A stretch of DNA of 64,000 nt from Phyllobates terribilis (Eukaryota). The position numbers were made by a program, and so were the translations under genes. The stretch covers positions 226,796,001 through 226,860,000 of the forward strand of contig NW_027362771.1 in assembly GCF_046119375.1 (NCBI RefSeq), in the 5' to 3' direction. The notes beneath the pieces are model-generated. The model saw nothing but the letters and a program-made list of their open reading frames with translations, did no database searches and had not been told where the DNA came from. Below, piece by piece: positions 37,386 through 64,000 of the stretch. Position 1 is the first letter of the stretch, and each line of letters opens with the position of its first letter.

Positions 37386-38712
37386 CCCCTTTCTGGCCCA
37401 GGGCGTACTAATACGTACCTGTGCCCTGGGCCTTATAGGCCTGATACGTATTAGTACGCCCTAGCGATATCGCCGGGCGAGATCGCCGCCGGGTGTCAGC
37501 TGTAACAATCAGGTGCTATATGCCAGGAGTGGTCCCGCACTGCTCTCTGCACATTAACCCCCGAAATGCTGCGATCGAAATCGATCGCAGCATTCTGGTG
37601 GCAAGAGGAGGTAAGCGTAATACTTACCTTCTCTGCCAGCGTCCCGCGGCGTCTAAGTCCGGTCCCAGATGTTGCCATGGTGACCCGATGACAAAATGAC
37701 AACATCTGGGTCACCAGGAGGCAGGAAGTTGCTTTGGTCATGCGCAGTGCACGACCAAAGTAACTTCTCCCTGTGCAGCGCTGACAGGCTACATAGGACA
37801 GGGATGGCTCAGCATCCGATCAGGCTGCAAAAAGTGAAAGTCCCATAGTGGGACAAAATGTAAAAGTCATAAAAATGTCATAAAGTGAAAAAAAAAAAAT
37901 CGTAAAAATATAAAAAAAAATGAAAAACATAATAAAAAAAATATATATATATATATATATTGTACCCATAAATAAATAATCTTATGAAAAAAAAATAAAA
38001 CAATAAAAGTACACATATTTGGTATCGCCGCGTCCGGAACGACCTGACCTATAAAACTGTCCCACTAGTTAACCCCTTTAGTGAACACGGTAAAAAAAAA
38101 AAAAAAAAAACGAAACATAAAACTATGTTTTATCATCATACAGCCAAACAAAGTGTGGAATAAAATGCGATCAAAAATACGAATATAAATAAAAATGGTA
38201 CCGCTGAAAACGTCATCTTGTGCCACAAAAAACAAACTGCCATACAGCTCCAGTGGCCGAAAAATAAAAAAGTTATAGCTCTCAAAATAAAGTGATGCAA
38301 AAACAATTCTTTTTTCTATAAAATAGTTTTTATTGTGTAAAAGCGCCAAAATATAAAAAAATATATAAATGTGGCACCGCTGTAAACATACTGACCCGAA
38401 GAATAAAGCTACCTTATCAATTTTACCACACGCAGAACGGCATAAAAAAAAAAGAAAAAAAAATTCCTGAATTGTTGGTTTTTGTTTATTCTGCCTTCTA
38501 AAAATCAGTATAGAAAGCGATCAAAAAATGTCACATGCCCGAAAATGGTACCAATAAAAACGTCAACTTGTCCTGCAAAAAACAAGCCATCACATGACTC
38601 TGTCAGGCAAAATAAGGAAAAATTATAGCTCTCAAAATATGGCAATGCAAAAACTAGTCTTTGCAAAAAAATGCCTCGTTTAGTGTGTGACAGCTGTCAA
38701 TCATAAAAACCC
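37386..38712 (+). mobile_element. Left part of a non-autonomous piggyBac-like element, truncated by the Penelope-like element
   Basis: Starts TTAA-CCCC. 37950-38712 is homologous to 23560-24320, and the homology stops at ...CATAAAAACCC where the pLTR begins. Confidence 0.75.
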
Positions 38713-39030
38713 AATAATTAATAAAGACCAAGCTCAACTATTGAAAAAGAAGGGTGCCAGGAATACAACACATGCATCCGTGTAGATAAAGATTCCGGCA
38801 CACCAAATAATATAGAAAAGTCTCATATAGGTGATAAAATAGTAGATGCTTTGTTTCTCCAATATCAACTGGTTCAAATCGTGGTCAGTATACAGTTGCC
38901 CAACGTTTCAACCCCAACGGGGTTTTCCTCAGGGGCTTCAGAAGAGCTTAAAAACCAGAGCATAAACAAAAATAAAGACATAAGTGAGATACAATATAGT
39001 AGATAATACAATGAGTAATATATACCAAAA
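38713..39030 (-). repeat. 3' pseudo-LTR of PLE copy 1
   Basis: Near-identical to 61640-61957, with about 4 differences seen by eye. Confidence 0.92.
38897..38937 (-). ncRNA. Minimal type I hammerhead ribozyme in the pLTR
   Basis: Minus strand reads GCCC-CUGAGGA-A-AACCCC-GUU-GGGGUU-GAAAC-GUU-GGGC. Confidence 0.8.
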
Positions 39031-39639
39031 TAGGTACAAGTTGATGGAACAAGACGAGGGGGAAAAAAAGAAGGGGGGGGAGGGGGCTAGGGGGAGGAAA
39101 AGGATGGGAAGGGAGAAAAAAGGGGAAGTGTTAGGGAGAACAACGGGAGTAGAGAGAAAAGGGAGCGTTATACACTCAAAACAAAAGGAGCGGACCGTTG
39201 TAAAGTGAAAGATTTTCAAGATACCTAGTTGCTATGTACTGCTTAATATCTGGGGATCTATCCATGTGACTGTAGAGAAGCTCAGGATAAATTACAATAA
39301 AGAGAACCAGTCGTTGTTGTGGTAAGGGAAAAATGTCAGCCGGCAATAGTAGCTGTGGTAGACAGCAAAGGTAAAATGAGTCACCAGTACCCAGATATAA
39401 CCTGTATCAAGGCAAGAAAATACTTGCCTTAAGCAATAATAGTGGTAATGGCCGAGGAGGTATGCCTACGGGGTATGGGAATAGACCTGAGACCAGAAAA
39501 AGTGGGTAAATACCAAAGTCTACATGGGGTCATAGGGGATAGAGATGATCAGCCCAGAAGGCTCTTACCTATGTGCCTCTTGGAAAGTGTATCCTGCCGG
39601 TGGTGGTGTGGTGTCAGGAGCGGTGACGGTGTTTAAATA

Positions 39640-39770
39640 GCGCTGTGTGACTTCCTGCTTCCGGAGTGCGATGACGCAACAACCGGTCTCGTGGAACGCA
39701 AATTCCGGTTGCGTGGAACGCATGACAGCGCATGTGCGCGACACAATGGGTGAGATATACATAGAGGGAA
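39640..39770 (-). promoter_or_regulatory. Candidate internal promoter of the PLE
   Basis: CpG-rich patch with CCGGAAG/GGAAGT (ETS-like), TGACGCAA (CRE-like) and GCGCATGTGCGC (NRF1-like) motifs upstream of TATTTAAA on the sense strand. Confidence 0.4.
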
Positions 39771-40360
39771 AAAAACACAACAGCGCGTGCGCAGGATGCG
39801 TACTGTGGAGCTGAGTGAACCTAAAGAAAGCCATTAGGAGCTAAGTGAGTGGTAGCTAAAAATGGATGAGGGTAATAAAGATGAAGGGGAGGACCATATT
39901 GGGGAAATGTTAATGTATGCCTGGGGGAAGGAGAAAAAGAAAAAATGAATAAACATATACATAAGAGGGGAAAGGCTGGGGAAACATATACAGATAGTAT
40001 ATGATGGTACATGCAGGGAGAAGGGGAAAGACAGGGGGGATGATTGATAAATAGACACACATACATATCCATGTGAGAGGGGAGAGGCAGGGGAAATATA
40101 TATTATATAGAGTACATGTAATATAGCATCCGCAAAACATTATAAGCAATTCAGTGTAACATAGAAAGTATTATATAGGGTGACACAAAGGATATATCCG
40201 GTTCATATATGTAGGGTCTGTGAAAAAAGTAAAAACATAATATAAGAAATACAGAACAAAGCGATAATAATGGGCAATATGCATATTGCCCTATGTATTT
40301 GTATTTACATAAGGAAGAACAAAGGATCATCACTGATAAACTTTCAAATAAGGTGGTATC

Positions 40361-40759
40361 TCAAACGTGAACCTCATATTCCCTGCTAAGGCCATGAGGT
40401 TCCAATGTCTTTAAGGTGAAGATCCAGAAGGCCTCCCTTTCTTTGAGCCTCTGGATCCTGTTTCCCCCTCTCCTGCCTGGTGGGACATGATCAATTACCA
40501 GGAAGCGTAATTGTGCGATAGAGTGATGGTGGGCAAGGAAATGGTTAGGGATGGGTAATAAATTGTACTTACATCGAATAGTGGATTTATGTTTGCTGAT
40601 CCTATCTCTGATGTGCTGTGTTGTTTCGCCAACGTACCCTAGACCGCATGGACACTTGATCAAATGCACTACGAATGAAGATTCACATGTTAAGTAACCC
40701 TTGACTGGGAACCTTTTGCCTGTAAGAGGATGTGTAAATGTACTTCCTCGAGTTATGTT
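40361..40759 (-). pseudogene. GIY-YIG endonuclease domain of PLE ORF2, separated from the RT by the hAT insertion
   Basis: Translates to VVHLIKCPCGLGYVGET..RDRISKH...LKEREAFWI...PHGLS. The expected Tyr and Asn consensus positions read His and Ser. Confidence 0.92.
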
Positions 40760-41265
40760 TAGTGTTGAGCCACCCCCATAGTGTTCGAGTTCGGTTCGGT
40801 TCGTCGAACACCCGTGTGTTCGCCGAACTGTTCGTCGAACTGTTCGTCGAACACCTTCGAACACCGTTAAAACCAATGGCAGGCAAACAAAAACACATAG
40901 AAACACATAGAAAACACCTTCAAAGGTGTCCAAAAGCTGACAAACTGCTCAGAAGACACAACTAACACATGGAAAAGTGACAAGTACATATAGTCATGCG
41001 AAAAGAAAAGAGGTGGAGGAGTAAGAGGAGGGGGAGACACAGATATAGTCATGTCATGCCCTTCTAAAATCCAAAAAGTGAGAAGCCGACACGTTCAGTC
41101 CGCTCCTGCCCGTGCCACCTCCGTGTCGCCGGGTTTGTGCCAGAGCCGCGGTGAACCCTGACGGCCAGCCCCCCTCTCCCAATACTAGTGCCTGTCCGCT
41201 GGTGGGTCGAGCGAGCCCCCCTGTGGTGGAGGCAGCTCTAAGCTTTTTAATTTAAATTGTCTCTC

Positions 41266-56200: not shown

Positions 56201-58068
56201 CCCACACACAGCTAGTAGCCCAAATATTTTTTCAGAGGTAGATGCAGATAAAAATTATTTTTAATTTGCAACCTGATGGAGGTCAGTATAGATGGACTAA
56301 TAGAGAAAGTCCCACACACTGCTAGAAGGCCAAATATTTTTTCAGAGCTAGATGCAGATATAATTTATTTTTAATTTGCAACCTGATGGAGGTCAGTATA
56401 GATGGACTAATAGAGAAAGTCCCACACACTGCTAGAAGGCCAAATATTTTTTCAGAGCTAGATGTAGAAAAAAATTATATTCAATTTGCAACCTGATGGA
56501 GGTCAGTATAGATGGACTAATAGAACAAGTCCCACAAACAGCTAGAAGCCCAAATATTTTTTCAGAGGTAGATGCAGAAAAAAATTATATTCAGTTTGCA
56601 ACCAGATGGAGGTCTGTATAGATGGATTAATAGAACAAGTCCCACACACAGCTAGAAGCCCAATATTTTTTCAGAGGTAGATGCAGAAAAAAAATATATT
56701 CAGTTTGCAACCTGATGGAGGTCAGTATAGATGGACTAATAGAGAAAGTCCCACACACTGCTAGAAGGCCAAATATTTTTTCAGAGCTAGATGCAGACAA
56801 AAAAATATTTTTAATTTGCAACCTGATGGAGGTCAGTATAGATGGACTAATAGAGAAAGTTCCACACACTGCTAGAAGGCCAAATATTTTTTCAGAGCTA
56901 GATGCAGATATAAATTATTTTTAATTTGCAACCTGATGGAGGTCAGTATAGATGGACTAATAGAGAAAGTCCCACACACTGCTAGAAGGCCAAATATTTT
57001 TTCAGACCTAGATGCAGAAAAAAATTATATTCAGTTTGCAACCTGATGGAGGTCAGTATAGATGGACTAATAGATCAAGTCCCACACACAGCTAGAAGGC
57101 CAAATATTTTTTCAGAGGTAGATGCAGATAAAAATTATTTTTAATTTGCAGCTTGATGGAGGTCAGTATAGATGGACTAATAGAGAAAGTCCCACACACT
57201 GCTAGAAGGCCAAATATTTTTTCAGAGCTAGATGCAGACAAAAAATTATTTTTAATTTGCAACCTGATGGAGGTCAGTATAGATGGACTAATAGAGAAAG
57301 TCCCACACACTGCTAGAAGGCCAAATATTTTTTCAGAGCTAGACGCAGACAAAAAATTATTTTTAATTTGCAACCTGATGGAGGTCAGTATAGATGGACT
57401 AATAGAGAAAGTCCCACACACTGCTAGAAGGCCAAATATTTTTTCAGAGCTAGATGCAGATAAAAAATATTTTTAATTTGCAGCCTGATGGAGGTCAGTA
57501 TAGATGGACTAATAGAGAAAGTCCCACACACTGCTAGAAGGCCAAATATTTTTTCAGAGCTAGATGCAGAAAAAAATTATATTCAGTTTGCAACCTGATG
57601 GAGGTCAGTATAGATGGACTAATAGAACAAGTCCCACACACAGCTAGAAGCCCAAATATTTTTTCAGAGGTAGATGCAGATAAAAATTATTTTTAATTTG
57701 CAACCTGATGGAGGTCAGTATAGATGGACTAATAGAGAAAGTCCCACACACTGCTAGAAGGCCAAATATTTTTTCAGAGCTAGATGCAGACAAAAAATTA
57801 GTTTGAATTTGCAGCGTGATGGAGGTCAGTATAGATGGACTAATAGAACAAGTCCCACACACTGCTGGAAGGCCAAATATTTTTTCAGGGCTAGATGCAG
57901 AAAAAAATTATATTCAGTTTGCAACCTGATGGAGGTCAGTATAGATGGACTAATAGAACAAGTCCCACACACTGCTAGAAGCCCAAATATTTTTTCAGAG
58001 CTAGATGCAGAAAAAAATTATATTCAATTTGCAACCTGATGGAGGTCAGTATAGATGGACTAATAGAA
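53266..58068. repeat. 110-bp satellite array (~44 monomers)
   Basis: Same monomer, with apparent 5- and 8-monomer higher-order periodicity. Confidence 0.97.
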
Positions 58069-58984
58069 TGATGCTATGCCCAAAAGATTTTACTTCACTA
58101 GGTGCAGTAAAAAAATTGGTATTCTATACACAGGTGGTATATCTTGCAACACAGATAGGCTACTCCACTGACTAACACACTCTGCAATAGGCCAAAAAGG
58201 ATTAGCTTTGCTAGATTCAGCCAAATGCTGTGAAAAAAACTTGCACAGCACTGGCACAGACCTGCCTGGCAAAAACTGATAGGAACTGATGTAACCTAGT
58301 CCTGAAAAGGACTGCAATTACAATTAGTCTTTACTCCCACAATCTATCTATTTAAGAGCACAGACCTGCCTGATAAAAGTCATAGGAAATGCTATAACCT
58401 AGTCCTTAAAAGGACTGCAATCACAACTATTCCCTACTCCCAAGCTATCTGTAGATTTGTGCGAAAATTGGCTTGAAATTAACAAGGTATAGCGCACACA
58501 GCAACAGCGGTGCCGTCTAACACGCAGCTGCAGCCGTGAGAAAATGGTGGCGACGGGGAAAATGGCTTGGTCTTATAGGGCAAGGACATGTGACATACAC
58601 TGCCAATGACACATGCCCTTGCTTGTGTGAAAAAAAGCACTTCGCTCCGTATGTGCGCTGCTGATAGGCTGACAGATTGCACCTCCCCACTGTAAATGCG
58701 GGAAAGAGAAAAAAAAATGGAGATCTTCATTATTCCTGCAGAGATCCATCCCCTGCCCCTCCCCCCACCCCGCTGTACACTCAAACTGCGTATTAACATT
58801 AATTTTCATCATTACTGAGAAAAAATCCAGTTATGATTTTGGTGCACGAACAGTTATCGAACATAACCTCGAACAGCCGAATTTTTCTCAAATCGTTCGT
58901 GTTCGCCGAACGGCTCGAACACCGCCCAAAACAGCTCGAATTTGAGATTGGCGAACAGTTCGAGTCGAACAACGCTCATCTCTA

Positions 58985-60850
58985 GTTATGTTTGAACATT
59001 GGCGGCAGCCTATGCATGGGAAATTGCCTAAGCGTGGTGTAGATAATGTCGTCTGGTGTGTCCTTAGGTTAAAACTCCCAATGTCGGCCCGTACCAGTCT
59101 GTCCCTAAGGTTCAGAGGTCTTTTGTTACATACCATGACCGGCTCTTGAAAGTCCGTGATCTTGGGATATGAATTGCTCAGTATTGGCCAATGAACCCTC
59201 AGAATATCACGGATTAGAGTCTGGCATGGATGGTAGGTGTTTACAAAAGTCATGCGGTTCGTCTTGGGTGTCTGTCGTCTGGGGGTAAGTGGTGGAAAGG
59301 CTGTTGGAGATGGGTAAACTCTGTTAATGAACTTTTGTCCCATTTCCATGTGTCGTTGGGTACGTGATGCTGGATCCGATACAATTCTACTGACTCTGGT
59401 GTGTTGTGAAATGGGTAGGGCATTTTTAATATGTCGGGGATGGCAACTGTTGTAATGAAGTAGACTATTACGGTCTGTAGGTTTGACAAAAAGATCAGTT
59501 GTGAAGTGGCCTCCTTCCTCTTGGATGATGGTTATATCAAGGAAATTGATGCAATGTTTGTCATGGTTCATAGTAAAGGAAATTTGAGGGGTACAATTAT
59601 TTAGGTAGTTGACAAATTCCATAAGTTTAGTCTCGGTGTTACCCCAGATGACATCAATATAACGTTTCCACATTTTGACGTCAGTGAAGGTGTTCAAAGA
59701 CACATACTGATGTTCGAAGTGTGCCATGAAGATATTAGCATATTTGGGGGCCATGTTGGACCCCATAGCTGTCCCTCGTTTCTGGATGTAATATTTGTCC
59801 CCAAAGAGGAAAAAATTATTATTAAGGATAATATCCGCTAGATCCCTACAGAGATCTATACGTGATTGGGGATATCCGCTATATTTGTCTAGGAACCATT
59901 GCAATGCCTGCAAACCAAGAGTATGATCAATTGATGTATATAGGCTATTCACATCAAATGTGACAAGAATGCATCCTGGGGGAATGGTGACCAGGTGATG
60001 AAGTTGTGACAGAAAATCAGAGGAGTCTTTGATATATGATGGAATGGCCGGTAACAATGGTGTCAAGATTTTCTCTACGGTTTTGGCTAGAGGGGATAAT
60101 AGTGAGTCTGTGGATGCCACAATGGGGCGTCCTGGAGGGTGTAGTAAATTTTTATGAATCTTGGGAAGTGTATAGAACACTGGGGTGACTGGATGTGTGT
60201 TAATGAGATACTCAGATAGTTTCTGATCAATAATGCCACGGCTAGATAGTGATTCTACTTTGCTCTGTATAAGTCGACTGATGCGATGTGTAGGGTTAAT
60301 GGTGACCTGGGTGTACACTTGTTGGTCATTTAGCTGTCCCTCAATCTCGCTCACATAATAAGAGCGATCCATGACCTCTATGGTGCCCCCCCTTGTCCAC
60401 TGGCTTAATCATGATTAGGTTATTCTTGGATAAGGAATTCCGGGTCTGTTTTTCCTCCCTAATAAGGTTGGTGTGTAAAGGGTATTCATTATGTTGTATT
60501 TTTGTCCTGAGTGTTTCAATGTCCTTATTGACAAGTGAGATATAAGTTTCCACTGGGTGATATATTTTTGGGGGGTTAAAGCGTGAAAGTAACCTCAGTC
60601 CCAGTTCCGTCAGTGATAGTTGTTCAGGATTCTGTGGTGCAGTGGAAGAAGGTGTCGAGTGGTCATCATTGGTGGAGAAATGTACCCTAAGCCTCAGACT
60701 GCGAAAAAAGCGTCTAAGTTCGAGGTCTAGGGTGAATGGGTCGTAGGACGGGGTTGGGCAAAAGGATAATCCCCTCTGTAGTGGTCCAATCTCTGTGGGG
60801 GTAAGGACTTGTGAGGAAATGTTGTATACAAGGTTGTCGGCCTACCTGTG
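58985..60850 (-). pseudogene. PLE ORF2 reverse-transcriptase region of copy 1, frameshifted and with a damaged YIDD motif
   Basis: Motifs DKG, FYTLPKIHK, PGRPIVAS, FDVNSLYTSI, GTAMGSNMAP, INFLDITI and a CxxCxxC linker. The catalytic motif reads RYIDVIWG, lacking the second Asp. There is a +1 shift near 60385. Confidence 0.93.
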
Positions 60851-61595
60851 ATCGGAGGGTCATTCTCTCGGGCTGCACCTGTAGGGGAACAGGAGGTGGT
60901 ATAGTGGTTAGGAATCTGGGGGACTCTGTAGACTGAACCCCTATGGCCCCGTCGCGTTTGGCGCGTCGGGGTTGTCGTGCCCCAAAAAAACATCTGGGAC
61001 GTTGGGATGTGTACTCGCTGTCGCTGCCGGAGGATGAGTAAAAACGTGAGCTGTATGTAGTGTGGCCTGATCGCCATTTATATACCCTGCCGGATAAGTA
61101 GTCTTCCTCGTCTCGCTTGAACTTAAGTAATTTACGGTCTTTTAGTGTCTTCTTATAAGAGAGTAGGATGTCAGTCGTTTTCTTCTTAAGGCCCTCAAAT
61201 TGTTCGGTGGAAATGGTATTCACCAGTTGGTCTTCTAAGGAGATGATCCTCCCTTCTAGTTCTGTTATCTCCTTTTGTATGGATTCAATGGTCAGTAAAA
61301 TCAAGTCCATGGAGCATTTGTTGAGGATGCTCTCGAATTTATTGCAGAAGTCAGCGTTATCGGAAAATAGGGTGGGTTGAAGATTGACCCTGAGTCCTCT
61401 GGGGATCCTTTTGACGCGGTGATACTCAGCAAGAGTGGAGAGATGAAGGTCCAGAGCAACTAGTTTCTTTCTTTCCTTTTCGTAGTCTCGTGTCTTGTTG
61501 TCCTCAATGGACGAGTGAAGAAAGATATTTCTATCAATTTTCGATAGAATTGCTACGGTATCTTCCTCATTGTAGGCAAATGTGTTAAATGACAT
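60714..61595 (-). CDS. PLE ORF1 (coiled-coil/basic protein of unknown function), copy 1
   Basis: 293-aa ORF directly upstream of and overlapping the RT region, with heptad-like IQKEITELEGRIISLEDQL. Near-identical to 62453-63196. Confidence 0.75.
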   Translation of the reverse strand: MSFNTFAYNEEDTVAILSKIDRNIFLHSSIEDNKTRDYEKERKKLVALDLHLSTLAEYHRVKRIPRGLRVNLQPTLFSDNADFCNKFESILNKCSMDLILLTIESIQKEITELEGRIISLEDQLVNTISTEQFEGLKKKTTDILLSYKKTLKDRKLLKFKRDEEDYLSGRVYKWRSGHTTYSSRFYSSSGSDSEYTSQRPRCFFGARQPRRAKRDGAIGVQSTESPRFLTTIPPPVPLQVQPERMTLRSQVGRQPCIQHFLTSPYPHRDWTTTEGIILLPNPVLRPIHPRPRT

Positions 61596-61639
61596 GGGGA
61601 TATAGCCTAGGAGCCTTGGTTACAACCAAATAGAAATAA

Positions 61640-61957
61640 ATAATTAATAAAGACCAAGCTCAACTATTGAAAAAGAAGGGTGCCAGGAATACAACACATG
61701 CATCCGTGTAGATAAAGATTCTGGCACACCAAATAATATAGAAAAGTCTCATATAGGTGATAAAATAGTAGATGCTTTATTTCTCCAATATCAACTGGTT
61801 CAAATCGTGGTCAGTATACAGTTGCCCAACGTTTCAACCCCAACGGGGTTTTCCTCAGGGGCATCAGAAGAGCTTAAAAACCAGAGCATAAACAAAAATA
61901 AAGACATAAGTGAGATACAATATAGTAGATAATACAATGAGCAATATATACCAAAAT
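61640..61957 (-). repeat. 5' pseudo-LTR of PLE copy 1
   Basis: Direct repeat of 38713-39030. Confidence 0.92.
61823..61863 (-). ncRNA. Minimal type I hammerhead ribozyme
   Basis: Minus strand reads UGCCC-CUGAGGA-A-AACCCC-GUU-GGGGUU-GAAAC-GUU-GGGCA. Confidence 0.82.
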
Positions 61958-62044
61958 ATATAGAAAAGTCTCATATAGGTGATAAAATAGTAGATGCTTT
62001 ATTTCTCCAATATCAACTGGTTCAAATCGTGGTCAGTATACAGT

Positions 62045-62085
62045 TGCCCAACGTTTCAACCCCAACGGGGTTTTCCTCAGGGGCA
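62045..62085 (-). ncRNA. Minimal type I hammerhead ribozyme (tandem duplicate)
   Basis: Identical motif 222 nt from the previous one, inside a ~130-bp duplicated pLTR piece (61958-62088). Confidence 0.82.
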
Positions 62086-62184
62086 TACCTATTTTGGTAT
62101 ATATTGCTCATTGTATTATCCACTATATTGTATCTCACTTATGTCTTTATTTTTGTTTATGCTGTGGTTTTTAAGCTCTTCTGA

Positions 62185-62225
62185 TGCCCCTGAGGAAAAC
62201 CCAGTTGGGATTGAAACATTGAGCA
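62185..62225 (+). ncRNA. Degenerate hammerhead ribozyme
   Basis: The core CUGAGGA...GAAA is kept, but there are 4 substitutions in stems I, II and III. Confidence 0.6.
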
Positions 62226-62452
62226 ACTGTATACTGACCACGATTTGAACCAGTTTATATTGGAGAAATAAAGCATCTACTATTTTATCACCTATATGAG
62301 ACTTTTCTATATTATTTGGTGTGCCGGAATCTTTATCTACACGGATGCATGTGTTGTATTCCTGGCACCCTTCTTTTTCAATAGTTGAGCTTGGTCTTTA
62401 TTAATTATTGATTTCTATTTGGTTGTAACCAAGGCTCCTAGGCTATATCCCC

Positions 62453-63196
62453 ATGTCGTTTAACACATTTGCCTACAATGAGGAAGATACCGTAGCAATT
62501 CTATCGAAAATTGATAGAAATACCTTTCTTCACTCGTCCATTGAGGACAACAAGACACGAGACTACGAAAAGGAAAGAAAGAAACTAGTTGCTCTGTACC
62601 TTCATCTCTCCACTCTTGCTGAGTATCACCGCGTCAAAAGGATCCCCAGAGGACTGAGGGTCAATCTTCAATCCACCCTATTTTCCGATAACGCTGACTT
62701 CTGCAATAAATTCGAGAGCATCCTCAACAAATGCTCCATGGACTTGATTTTACTGACCATTGAATCCATACAAAAGGAGATAACAGAACTAGAAGGGAGG
62801 ATCATCTCCTTAGATGACCAACTGGTGAATACCATTTCCACCGAACAATTTGAGGGCCTTAAGAAGAAAACGACTGACATCCTACTCTCTTATAAGAAGA
62901 CACTACAAGACCGTAAATTACTTAAGTTCAAGCGAGACAAGGAAGACTACTTATCCGGCAGGGTATTTAAATGGCGATCAGGCCACACTACATATGGCTC
63001 CCGTTTTTACTCATCCTCCGGCAGCGACAGCGAGTACACATCCCAACGTCCCAGATGTTTTTTTGGGGCACGACAACCCCGACGCGCCAAACGCGGCGGG
63101 GACATAGGGGTTCAGTCTACAGAGTCCACCAGATTCCTAACCACTATACCACCTCCTGTTCCCCTACAGGTGCAGCCCGAGAGAATGACCCTCTGA
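62453..63196 (+). CDS. PLE ORF1, copy 2
   Basis: 247-aa ORF. It ends at a TGA where copy 1 has CGA. Confidence 0.75.
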   Translation: MSFNTFAYNEEDTVAILSKIDRNTFLHSSIEDNKTRDYEKERKKLVALYLHLSTLAEYHRVKRIPRGLRVNLQSTLFSDNADFCNKFESILNKCSMDLILLTIESIQKEITELEGRIISLDDQLVNTISTEQFEGLKKKTTDILLSYKKTLQDRKLLKFKRDKEDYLSGRVFKWRSGHTTYGSRFYSSSGSDSEYTSQRPRCFFGARQPRRAKRGGDIGVQSTESTRFLTTIPPPVPLQVQPERMTL

Positions 63197-64000
63197 TCAC
63201 AGGTAGGCCCGACAACCTCGTATACAACATTTCCTCACAAGTCCTTACCCCCACAGAGATTGGACTACTACAGAGGGGATTATCCTTTTGCCCAACCCCG
63301 TCCTTCGACCCATTCACCCTAGACCTTGAACTTAGACGCTTTTTTCGTAGTCTGAGACTTAAGGTACATTTCTCCACAAATGATGACCACTCGACACCTT
63401 CTTCCACTGCACCACAGAATCCTGAACAACTATCACTGAAGGAACTAGGACTGAGGTTACTTTCATGCTTTAACCCCCCAAAAATATATCACCCAGTGGA
63501 AACTTATATCTCACTTGTCAATAAGGACATTGAAACACTCAGGACAAAAATACAACATAATGAATACCCTTTACACACCAACCTTACTAGGGAGGAAAAA
63601 CAGAGCCTGAATTCCTTATCCAAGAATAACTTTATCATGATTAAGCCAGCGGACAAGGGGGGTGCCATAGTGGTCATGGATCTCTCTTATTATGTGAGTG
63701 AGATTGAGGGACAGCTAAATGACCAACAAGTATACACCCAGGTCACCATTAACCCTACACATCGCATCAGTCGACTTATACAGAGCAAAGTAGAATCACT
63801 ATCTAGCCATGGCATTATTGATCAGAAACTATCTGAGTATCTCATTAACACACATCCAGTCACCCCAGTGTTCTATACACTTCCCAAGATTCATAAAAGT
63901 TTACTACACTCTCCAGGACGCCCCATTGTGGCATCCACAGACTCACTATTATCCCCTCTAGCCAAAACCGTAAAGAAAATCTTGACACCATTGTTACCGG
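62971..64000 (+). CDS. PLE ORF2 (RT N-terminal part), open to the window edge and not listed in the ORF track
   Basis: Manual translation from ATG 62971 has no stop to 64000: ...NLVYNISSQVLTPTEIGLLQRGLSFCPTP...KPADKGGAIVVMD...FYTLPKIHK...PGRPIVAS. Confidence 0.9.
   Translation, partial: MAIRPHYIWLPFLLILRQRQRVHIPTSQMFFWGTTTPTRQTRRGHRGSVYRVHQIPNHYTTSCSPTGAARENDPLITGRPDNLVYNISSQVLTPTEIGLLQRGLSFCPTPSFDPFTLDLELRRFFRSLRLKVHFSTNDDHSTPSSTAPQNPEQLSLKELGLRLLSCFNPPKIYHPVETYISLVNKDIETLRTKIQHNEYPLHTNLTREEKQSLNSLSKNNFIMIKPADKGGAIVVMDLSYYVSEIEGQLNDQQVYTQVTINPTHRISRLIQSKVESLSSHGIIDQKLSEYLINTHPVTPVFYTLPKIHKSLLHSPGRPIVASTDSLLSPLAKTVKKILTPLLP

Follow-up and report, generated by a model that had tools for sequence, protein, structure and literature searches.

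A 64,000-nucleotide (nt) stretch of Phyllobates terribilis DNA (hereafter the window, meaning the whole stretch that was analysed) contains a retroelement in two head-to-head copies, which show 97.2% identity across 1.9 kb and join at about 61958-62090. Copy 2 occupies the plus strand from ~62090 to the window end, by which it is interrupted, and copy 1 runs on the minus strand from ~61958 downwards. A preliminary description of this DNA had taken the element for a Penelope-like element (PLE) in which a first open reading frame (ORF1) is joined to a reverse transcriptase (RT) and endonuclease (EN) by a -1 frameshift at a run of U residues, and this core claim is supported by the sequence comparison reported below, in which the slippery heptamer and the -1 offset recur in ten of ten lineages. 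In copy 2, ORF1 (62453..63196, +; 247 amino acids (aa)) ends at a TGA that is specific to this copy. The second frame (ORF2; 62971..64000, +) lies at -1 relative to ORF1, has an ATG at 62971 and no stop between there and the end of the window, and comprises an N-terminal extension and the start of the RT. The overlap of 226 nt that had been described for the two frames is correct for copy 2.

The proposed frameshift site is the slippery heptamer T_TTT_TTT (63058..63064, +), which falls within the ORF1 codons TGT TTT TTT GGG, encoding C F F G. Position 63058 is a third codon position of ORF1, so that the heptamer stands in exact X_XXY_YYZ register, as had been noted before; the predicted trans-frame product reads ...RCFF and then WGTT..., and by the proposed mechanism the ORF2 frame would be translated from 63058 onward. 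The neighbouring elements of the earlier account, namely GGGG (63065-68), 8 nt further on CCCC (63077-80), and an imperfect hairpin at 63077-63101, are all present as well. Copy 1 retains the heptamer (60990-60984) and the hairpin (60971-60947), the latter with one change in its internal mismatch, and because the two copies are 97% identical this retention is uninformative. Relatives of the element also carry ~5 other in-register heptamers per ~1900 ORF1 codons. A single in-register heptamer in a 75-codon overlap is therefore not rare, and its significance rests on the relatives.

Conservation of the proposed slip site and of the overlap

We compared ten lineages at the DNA level, namely the window and nine lineages of Logan contigs with intact ORF1s. 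Pairwise ORF1 protein identity among them is 26-53% (median 34%), and synonymous sites are thus saturated. The RT motif lies in the -1 frame relative to ORF1 in 10/10 lineages, and in each of the ten the codon pair corresponding to 63059-63064 forms a slippery heptamer that stands in register. This is T_TTT_TTA in six of them (L002, L003, L006, L009, L010 and L011) and T_TTT_TTT in three (the window, L004 and L012), while the remaining lineage, L005, has C_CCT_TTC one codon upstream, followed by TTC and without any homopolymer. The bases flanking the heptamer vary freely. Judged by the ORF1 codon usage of the lineages, the probability of T TTT TTA given x-F-L is 0.037 per lineage and that of T TTT TTT given x-F-F is 0.15; all six F-L lineages (6/6) use TTT TTA with T before it. 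At the protein level, the first slip codon encodes F203. An alignment of 47 ORF1 proteins has only 10 invariant columns, F203 among them, and no other invariant residue falls within the disordered tail. As x-Phe-Leu would be written T TTT TTA in only 3.7% of cases and F203 is invariant, the comparison indicates that the heptamer is under nucleotide-level selection as a slip site. Thus, of the features whose conservation the preliminary description had proposed to examine across relatives, the heptamer and the -1 offset are borne out in all ten lineages, whereas no stem pairs are conserved.

Selection is also visible downstream of the heptamer in the -1 frame. A basic motif, T-R-R-G-H-R-G in the window (63091..63111, +) and TRRGGRKHRR-like in relatives, is conserved in 10/10 lineages, where it starts ~10-15 codons past the heptamer in this frame, and its conservation exceeds that of the same bases read in the 0 frame. 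Over the 28 codons after the heptamer, mean pairwise identity amounts to 0.24 in the -1 frame, compared with 0.165 in the 0 frame and 0.118 in the +1 frame, the last with four stops. Towards the 3' end of the overlap the opposite holds, and it is TRSQ in the 0 frame that is conserved. The overlap is genuinely dual-coding, like retroviral gag-pol overlaps. The -1 frame opens 3-204 nt upstream of the heptamer across the ten lineages, and in L002, L006, L009, L010, L011 and L012 it opens 3-60 nt before it. In these six of the ten, the -1 frame contains no ATG from its upstream stop up to the basic motif. An earlier caveat, that ORF2 has its own ATG at 62971, applies to the window but not to the six lineages, where no such ATG exists.

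The ORF1 protein family and the class of the element

A profile-free scan of 1.84 billion representative proteins returned 784 homologues of ORF1 at E<=0.001 and 56 at E<=1e-30, mostly stand-alone proteins of 240-300 aa. All named homologues are "uncharacterized" proteins of frogs and toads, from the genera Anomaloglossus, Ranitomeya, Dendrobates, Phyllobates, Bufo, Hyla, Dendropsophus, Rhinoderma, Xenopus and Pelobates. The C-termini of ~100 ORF1 proteins show ...TRSQ followed by a stop within 0-12 codons. Since stand-alone ORF1s of ~240-260 aa that end just past ...TRSQ predominate among the homologues, the two-ORF layout is read as ancestral rather than as a product of decay. Dozens of RefSeq/GenBank entries named "uncharacterized protein" (~240-270 aa, from at least 10 anuran genera) are PLE ORF1 proteins, and one ORF1 homologue, P0175, is mislabelled "translation machinery-associated protein 16 isoform". 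The Logan gene call P0114 (313 aa, L001:170-1111) was considered as a natural ORF1-RT fusion at the FLG motif and rejected, as the gene caller had read an in-frame TGA as Trp; the L001 contig itself is a degraded copy with several frame changes.

The preliminary description had called ORF1 a coiled-coil protein and had suggested structure prediction and a profile search. An AlphaFold model built on the 47-sequence alignment has a mean predicted local distance difference test score (pLDDT) of 80.9, with 137 residues at 90 or above, and consists of three long helices (residues 25-60, 81-127 and 130-168) and a disordered tail from ~178. The tail is Ser-rich and Arg/Gly-rich, and its conserved features are the F-L/F-G motif, the Arg/Gly-rich repeats and the terminal ...TRSQ. 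The coiled-coil label agrees loosely with the three predicted helices and the disordered basic tail. The helical model is confident. Neither a known family nor a known fold was matched significantly: the Pfam scan of ORF1 gave a noise match only (HBB, E 0.044), Foldseek searches of the model against the PDB and the Swiss-Prot models yielded no significant fold match, the ESM Atlas search returned no match above 0.62, and no capsid or zinc-knuckle match to ORF1 was obtained.

In copy 2, the conserved N-terminal motifs of PLE RTs (LVYNISSQVLTPTEIGLLQRGLSFCP...) begin at 63217..63300 (+) in the -1 frame, where the motif LVYNISS...LLQRGLSFCP, common to relatives, starts at 63217. Using tblastn, the RT regions of P0046 (Bufo gargarizans XP_044139139.1, 1065 aa) and P0004 match 63211-63999 and 60393-58975 at 45-50% identity. 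The RT part of copy 1, a 494-aa ORF (58888..60372, -) separated from ORF1 by frame breaks, matches Pfam RVT_1 weakly, with 27.8 bits, just below the cut-off of 29.6. The N-terminal RT region of relatives (L009:1147-1623; P0008, P0181 and P0182) carries Pfam PF28514 (DUF8422), and no family scored for the N-terminus of the window ORF2 in a Pfam copy without PF28514. At the end of the copy 1 RT ORF stands the linker FPCIGCRQCSN, which corresponds to FPCLTCSQCSN in P0046. The endonuclease predicted by the preliminary description was located for copy 1 as a GIY-YIG segment (40367..40759, -; read 40759-40367) that matches the P0046 C-terminus at 60% identity and has the pattern ..VVHLIKC..GYVGET.. 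with flanking Cys/His, even though the Pfam GIY-YIG match to it is weak (E 0.007, below the cut-off); the copy 2 endonuclease would fall outside the window. Because the GIY-YIG segment lies ~18 kb from the RT segment, copy 1 is split by a large insertion or expansion. A CX2-5CxxC linker between RT and EN sets Neptune/Nematis apart from Penelope/Poseidon according to PMC8557442. The element can thus be described as an endonuclease-bearing, Neptune-like PLE, the linker motif being the sole basis of this clade placement. Rfam searches for hammerhead ribozymes found none at the gathering threshold in 57000-64000, none at E<=1 in 61500-62500 and none at E<=0.1 in 38000-41000.

Copy 1 is a dead copy. 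Its ORF1 (60714..61595, -), which holds the heptamer, continues into the third frame through a 1-nt deletion near 60840/60841 (-), immediately before the RT N-terminal motif, and additional frame breaks follow at 60553-60341 (-), between ORF1 and the 494-aa RT ORF. The ORF1 stop of copy 2, TGA at 63194-63196, corresponds to CGA in copy 1 (60854-60852, -) and occupies the Arg position of the conserved (M)T(L)RSQ; the 0-frame end motif here reads M-T-L-(stop)-S-Q (63185..63202, +) and matches the conserved C-terminal ...TRSQ of the ORF1 family. The TGA probably arose by a C-to-T change at a CpG, likely through deamination, and deprives ORF1 of its final conserved residues; without it the 0 frame would continue until TAG 63321-63323. 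The 226-nt overlap and the ORF1 end at 63196 are therefore peculiar to copy 2, and the TGA lies downstream of the slip site, which leaves the proposed mechanism unaffected. Around the head-to-head junction, a 137-nt unit is repeated in direct and inverted orientation (61728-61864, 61950-62086 and, inverted, 62184-62320), and a third terminal fragment, 97% identical, is found at 38712-39036. MicroRNA-like Rfam matches at 62054-62216 were dismissed as spurious, being produced by the long palindrome at the copy junction.

The proposed frameshift and its alternatives

Taken together, we consider it likely that the ORF1-RT-EN protein is expressed in gag-pol style, by -1 ribosomal frameshifting at U_UUU_UUU. 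Most ribosomes would read ORF1 up to its stop and make a helical protein whose basic tail is rich in Arg and Gly, while a minority would slip back by one base on the two Phe codons of U_UUU_UUU (63058-63064). The slipped ribosomes would then read, in the -1 frame, a short basic linker with the TRRG..R motif, followed by the RT and the GIY-YIG endonuclease, and the product would be an ORF1(1-204)-RT-EN fusion. The ribosomal nature of the slip, its efficiency and its stimulator are what we infer.

Several observations weigh against this interpretation, and most of them concern the RNA downstream of the heptamer. RNAalifold on the ten lineages gave 0 consensus pairs, a result that does not include an explicit pseudoknot search, and minimum free energy (MFE) z-scores for the downstream 45-75 nt, obtained on single sequences against shuffles at three segment lengths, lie between -3.3 and +1.7 in the ten lineages, with a mean near zero and no trend. 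The GC-rich hairpin of the window (63077..63101, +) begins 12 nt past the heptamer, compared with a usual spacing of about 5-9 nt, and lacks significance, its MFE of -17.5 kcal/mol standing against -14.8 +/- 2.4 for dinucleotide shuffles (z -1.14), of which 24/200 fold at least as well. The role of stimulator that had been suggested for it is therefore not upheld. Across the ten lineages, the 75 nt after the slip site average 63% GC, versus 43% in the ORF1 body and 39% in the RT. This GC-rich block is a conserved composition that would give lineage-specific stable folds, and it could just as well result from the coding of Arg and Gly in both frames. A G-rich, ACGMGGMGGGG-like stretch was rejected as stimulator, since its distance of 24-45 nt from the site is too large and too variable, and it codes for the RRGG motif. 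As to the sequences themselves, the nine relative lineages are Logan contigs that may derive from genomic or from transcript sequencing runs, and copy 2 extends past the window end, so that only its 5' half is visible. Finally, two database proteins, P0007 (Ranitomeya imitator, 650 aa) and P0046, fuse ORF1 to the RT in one frame just past TRSQ; these may be mutated or domesticated copies, or gene-model artefacts. The junction that they suggest, after ...TRSQ at CAG/GTAGG (63203), was rejected, because the conserved heptamer and the -1-frame motif lie upstream of TRSQ.

The most serious alternative is that RNA polymerase II or the reverse transcriptase slips on the run of T6-T8, so that some RNAs have one U fewer or two more and the fusion arises at the RNA level. 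A homopolymer of 6-8 T is indeed present in 9/10 lineages, and the database proteins P0014, P0086 and P0181 switch from the ORF1 to the RT frame nearby, as expected for an unstable run length, although these early-switching models are also compatible with mutated copies or gene-model joins. A run of six U is, however, rather short for a eukaryotic polymerase to slip on it efficiently. In six lineages the heptamer ends in A, with exact codon register, a feature that is relevant to tRNA slippage but not to polymerase stuttering, and the C_CCT_TTC of L005, followed by TTC, still follows the canonical pattern of tRNA re-pairing. Because this heptamer is valid without a homopolymer run, tRNA re-pairing is favoured, and we regard polymerase slippage as quite unlikely. 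Separate translation of ORF2, which would yield no fusion, could start at its own ATG or a non-AUG codon, through leaky scanning or by termination-reinitiation; the window does offer -1-frame ATGs at 62971 and 63055, and for L002, L005 and L006 gene callers put the beginning of ORF2 right next to the ORF1 stop. Nevertheless, neither separate AUG initiation nor reinitiation after ORF1 can yield the basic motif, as six lineages have no ATG before it and the motif, whose -1-frame reading is conserved, precedes the ORF1 stop, where reinitiation could not reach it. This makes separate translation very unlikely.

The two frames could also be joined at the RNA level by splicing of a short intron, for instance with the donor-like CAG/GTAGG at 63203 or the acceptor-like ...CCCCTACAG at 63171. 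Such splice-like motifs do occur in the window, some gene models, P0010 for example, connect TRSQ with internal RT sequence, and PLEs, for which intron retention is known, carry introns according to the Fig. 1 legend of PMC8557442 and to PMC3846280. Yet the residue after TRSQ varies widely and the GT is not conserved, a donor at 63203 is too close to the RT motif at 63217 for an intron to fit between them, and, with the -1-frame motif upstream of both splice-like motifs, a change of frame would still be required at or before the heptamer, so that we hold splicing to be extremely unlikely. The same low credence is given to a decay artefact, in which the family would truly be single-ORF and the offset in the window a 1-nt indel common to two dead copies that arose by local duplication. 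These copies are neighbours and, at 97% identity, not independent, copy 1 is clearly broken, and copy 2 carries the premature TGA. However, the -1 offset and the heptamer recur in the nine other lineages, which have intact ORF1s at 26-53% identity, and stand-alone ORF1s of ~250 aa dominate the 784 homologues; the conservation in ten lineages contradicts the decay reading.

A more far-reaching version of the frameshift proposal, which we put forward as a speculation and think rather improbable, is that a whole clade of vertebrate EN+ PLEs, which are commonly presented as single-ORF elements, ancestrally uses a gag-pol-like -1 frameshift that takes place at an invariant Phe codon and needs no conserved RNA structure. 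Frameshifting of this kind would be either structure-independent and of low efficiency or else stimulated in trans. Trans stimulation is known from cardiovirus 2A and arterivirus nsp1-beta, which stimulate frameshifting in this manner, and by analogy the Arg/Gly-rich tail of ORF1 might, for instance, bind the downstream GC/G-rich block.

Relation to known retroelements and implications

A -1 frameshift between a structural ORF and an RT is a textbook strategy of retroelements. As in the gag-pol region of human immunodeficiency virus type 1 (HIV-1), of other retroviruses and of long terminal repeat (LTR) retrotransposons, an upstream ORF of structural type overlaps the polymerase ORF in the -1 frame here. 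The heptamer belongs to the same class as that of HIV-1, six of the PLE relatives carrying exactly U_UUU_UUA, and the expected outcome is likewise an abundant ORF1 protein and a rarer ORF1-RT fusion. On the other hand, no conserved stem-loop or pseudoknot was found 5-9 nt downstream of the PLE heptamer, the PLE ORF1 is not a Gag, and the polymerase consists of a PLE RT and GIY-YIG instead of protease, RT and integrase.

Within PLEs, there is a likeness to the Neptune type as presented by Craig et al. 2021 (PMC8557442), with which the frog element shares the RT N-terminal motifs, the FPC..C..C linker and the GIY-YIG domain; the head-to-head inverted arrangement with repeated terminal pieces is also typical of PLE insertions according to the abstract of that paper. 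The same abstract, however, presents canonical EN+ PLEs as single ORFs, whereas the frog family has a separate ORF1 with a conserved frameshift site as the rule. The legend of Fig. 1 in that paper states that [quoted passage not shown], a point that the text does not take up. Upstream, putatively structural coiled-coil ORFs accompany the PLE RTs of the EN-minus Athena/Terminon elements too (PMC6431247; PMC5408684). Those elements are from rotifers, telomere-associated and endonuclease-deficient, in contrast to the frog family, which is anuran among the named matches and has an endonuclease, the ORFs being compared here by description. In the killifish Neptune (PMC12602865), an ORF1 of unknown function likewise precedes an RT/GIY-YIG ORF2, but there, again by description, the ORFs do not overlap, ORF1 measures 420 nt and lacks similarity to anything, and no frameshift was proposed. 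Full-text literature searches turned up no EN+ PLE for which a slippery site is described. The idea of frameshifting in PLEs is thus neither surprising in principle nor wholly unanticipated, and the comparative evidence for it is solid.

Among the major classes of retrotransposons, PLEs are the one least understood, and to the best of our knowledge there is no experimental insight into the production and assembly of their proteins. A deeply conserved slip site with a defined trans-frame junction (...CFF/WGTT...) therefore provides a testable handle on PLE protein production. In frog genome annotations, hundreds of entries of ~250 aa named "uncharacterized protein" are PLE ORF1, and some gene models bridge the frameshift by artificial joins. 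For the biology of the family, the frameshift site and the large ORF1 family, with its 784 representatives, helical model and RGG-like tail, suggest that these elements need a stoichiometric excess of ORF1 protein over RT-EN, as do retroviruses and long interspersed nuclear elements (LINEs).

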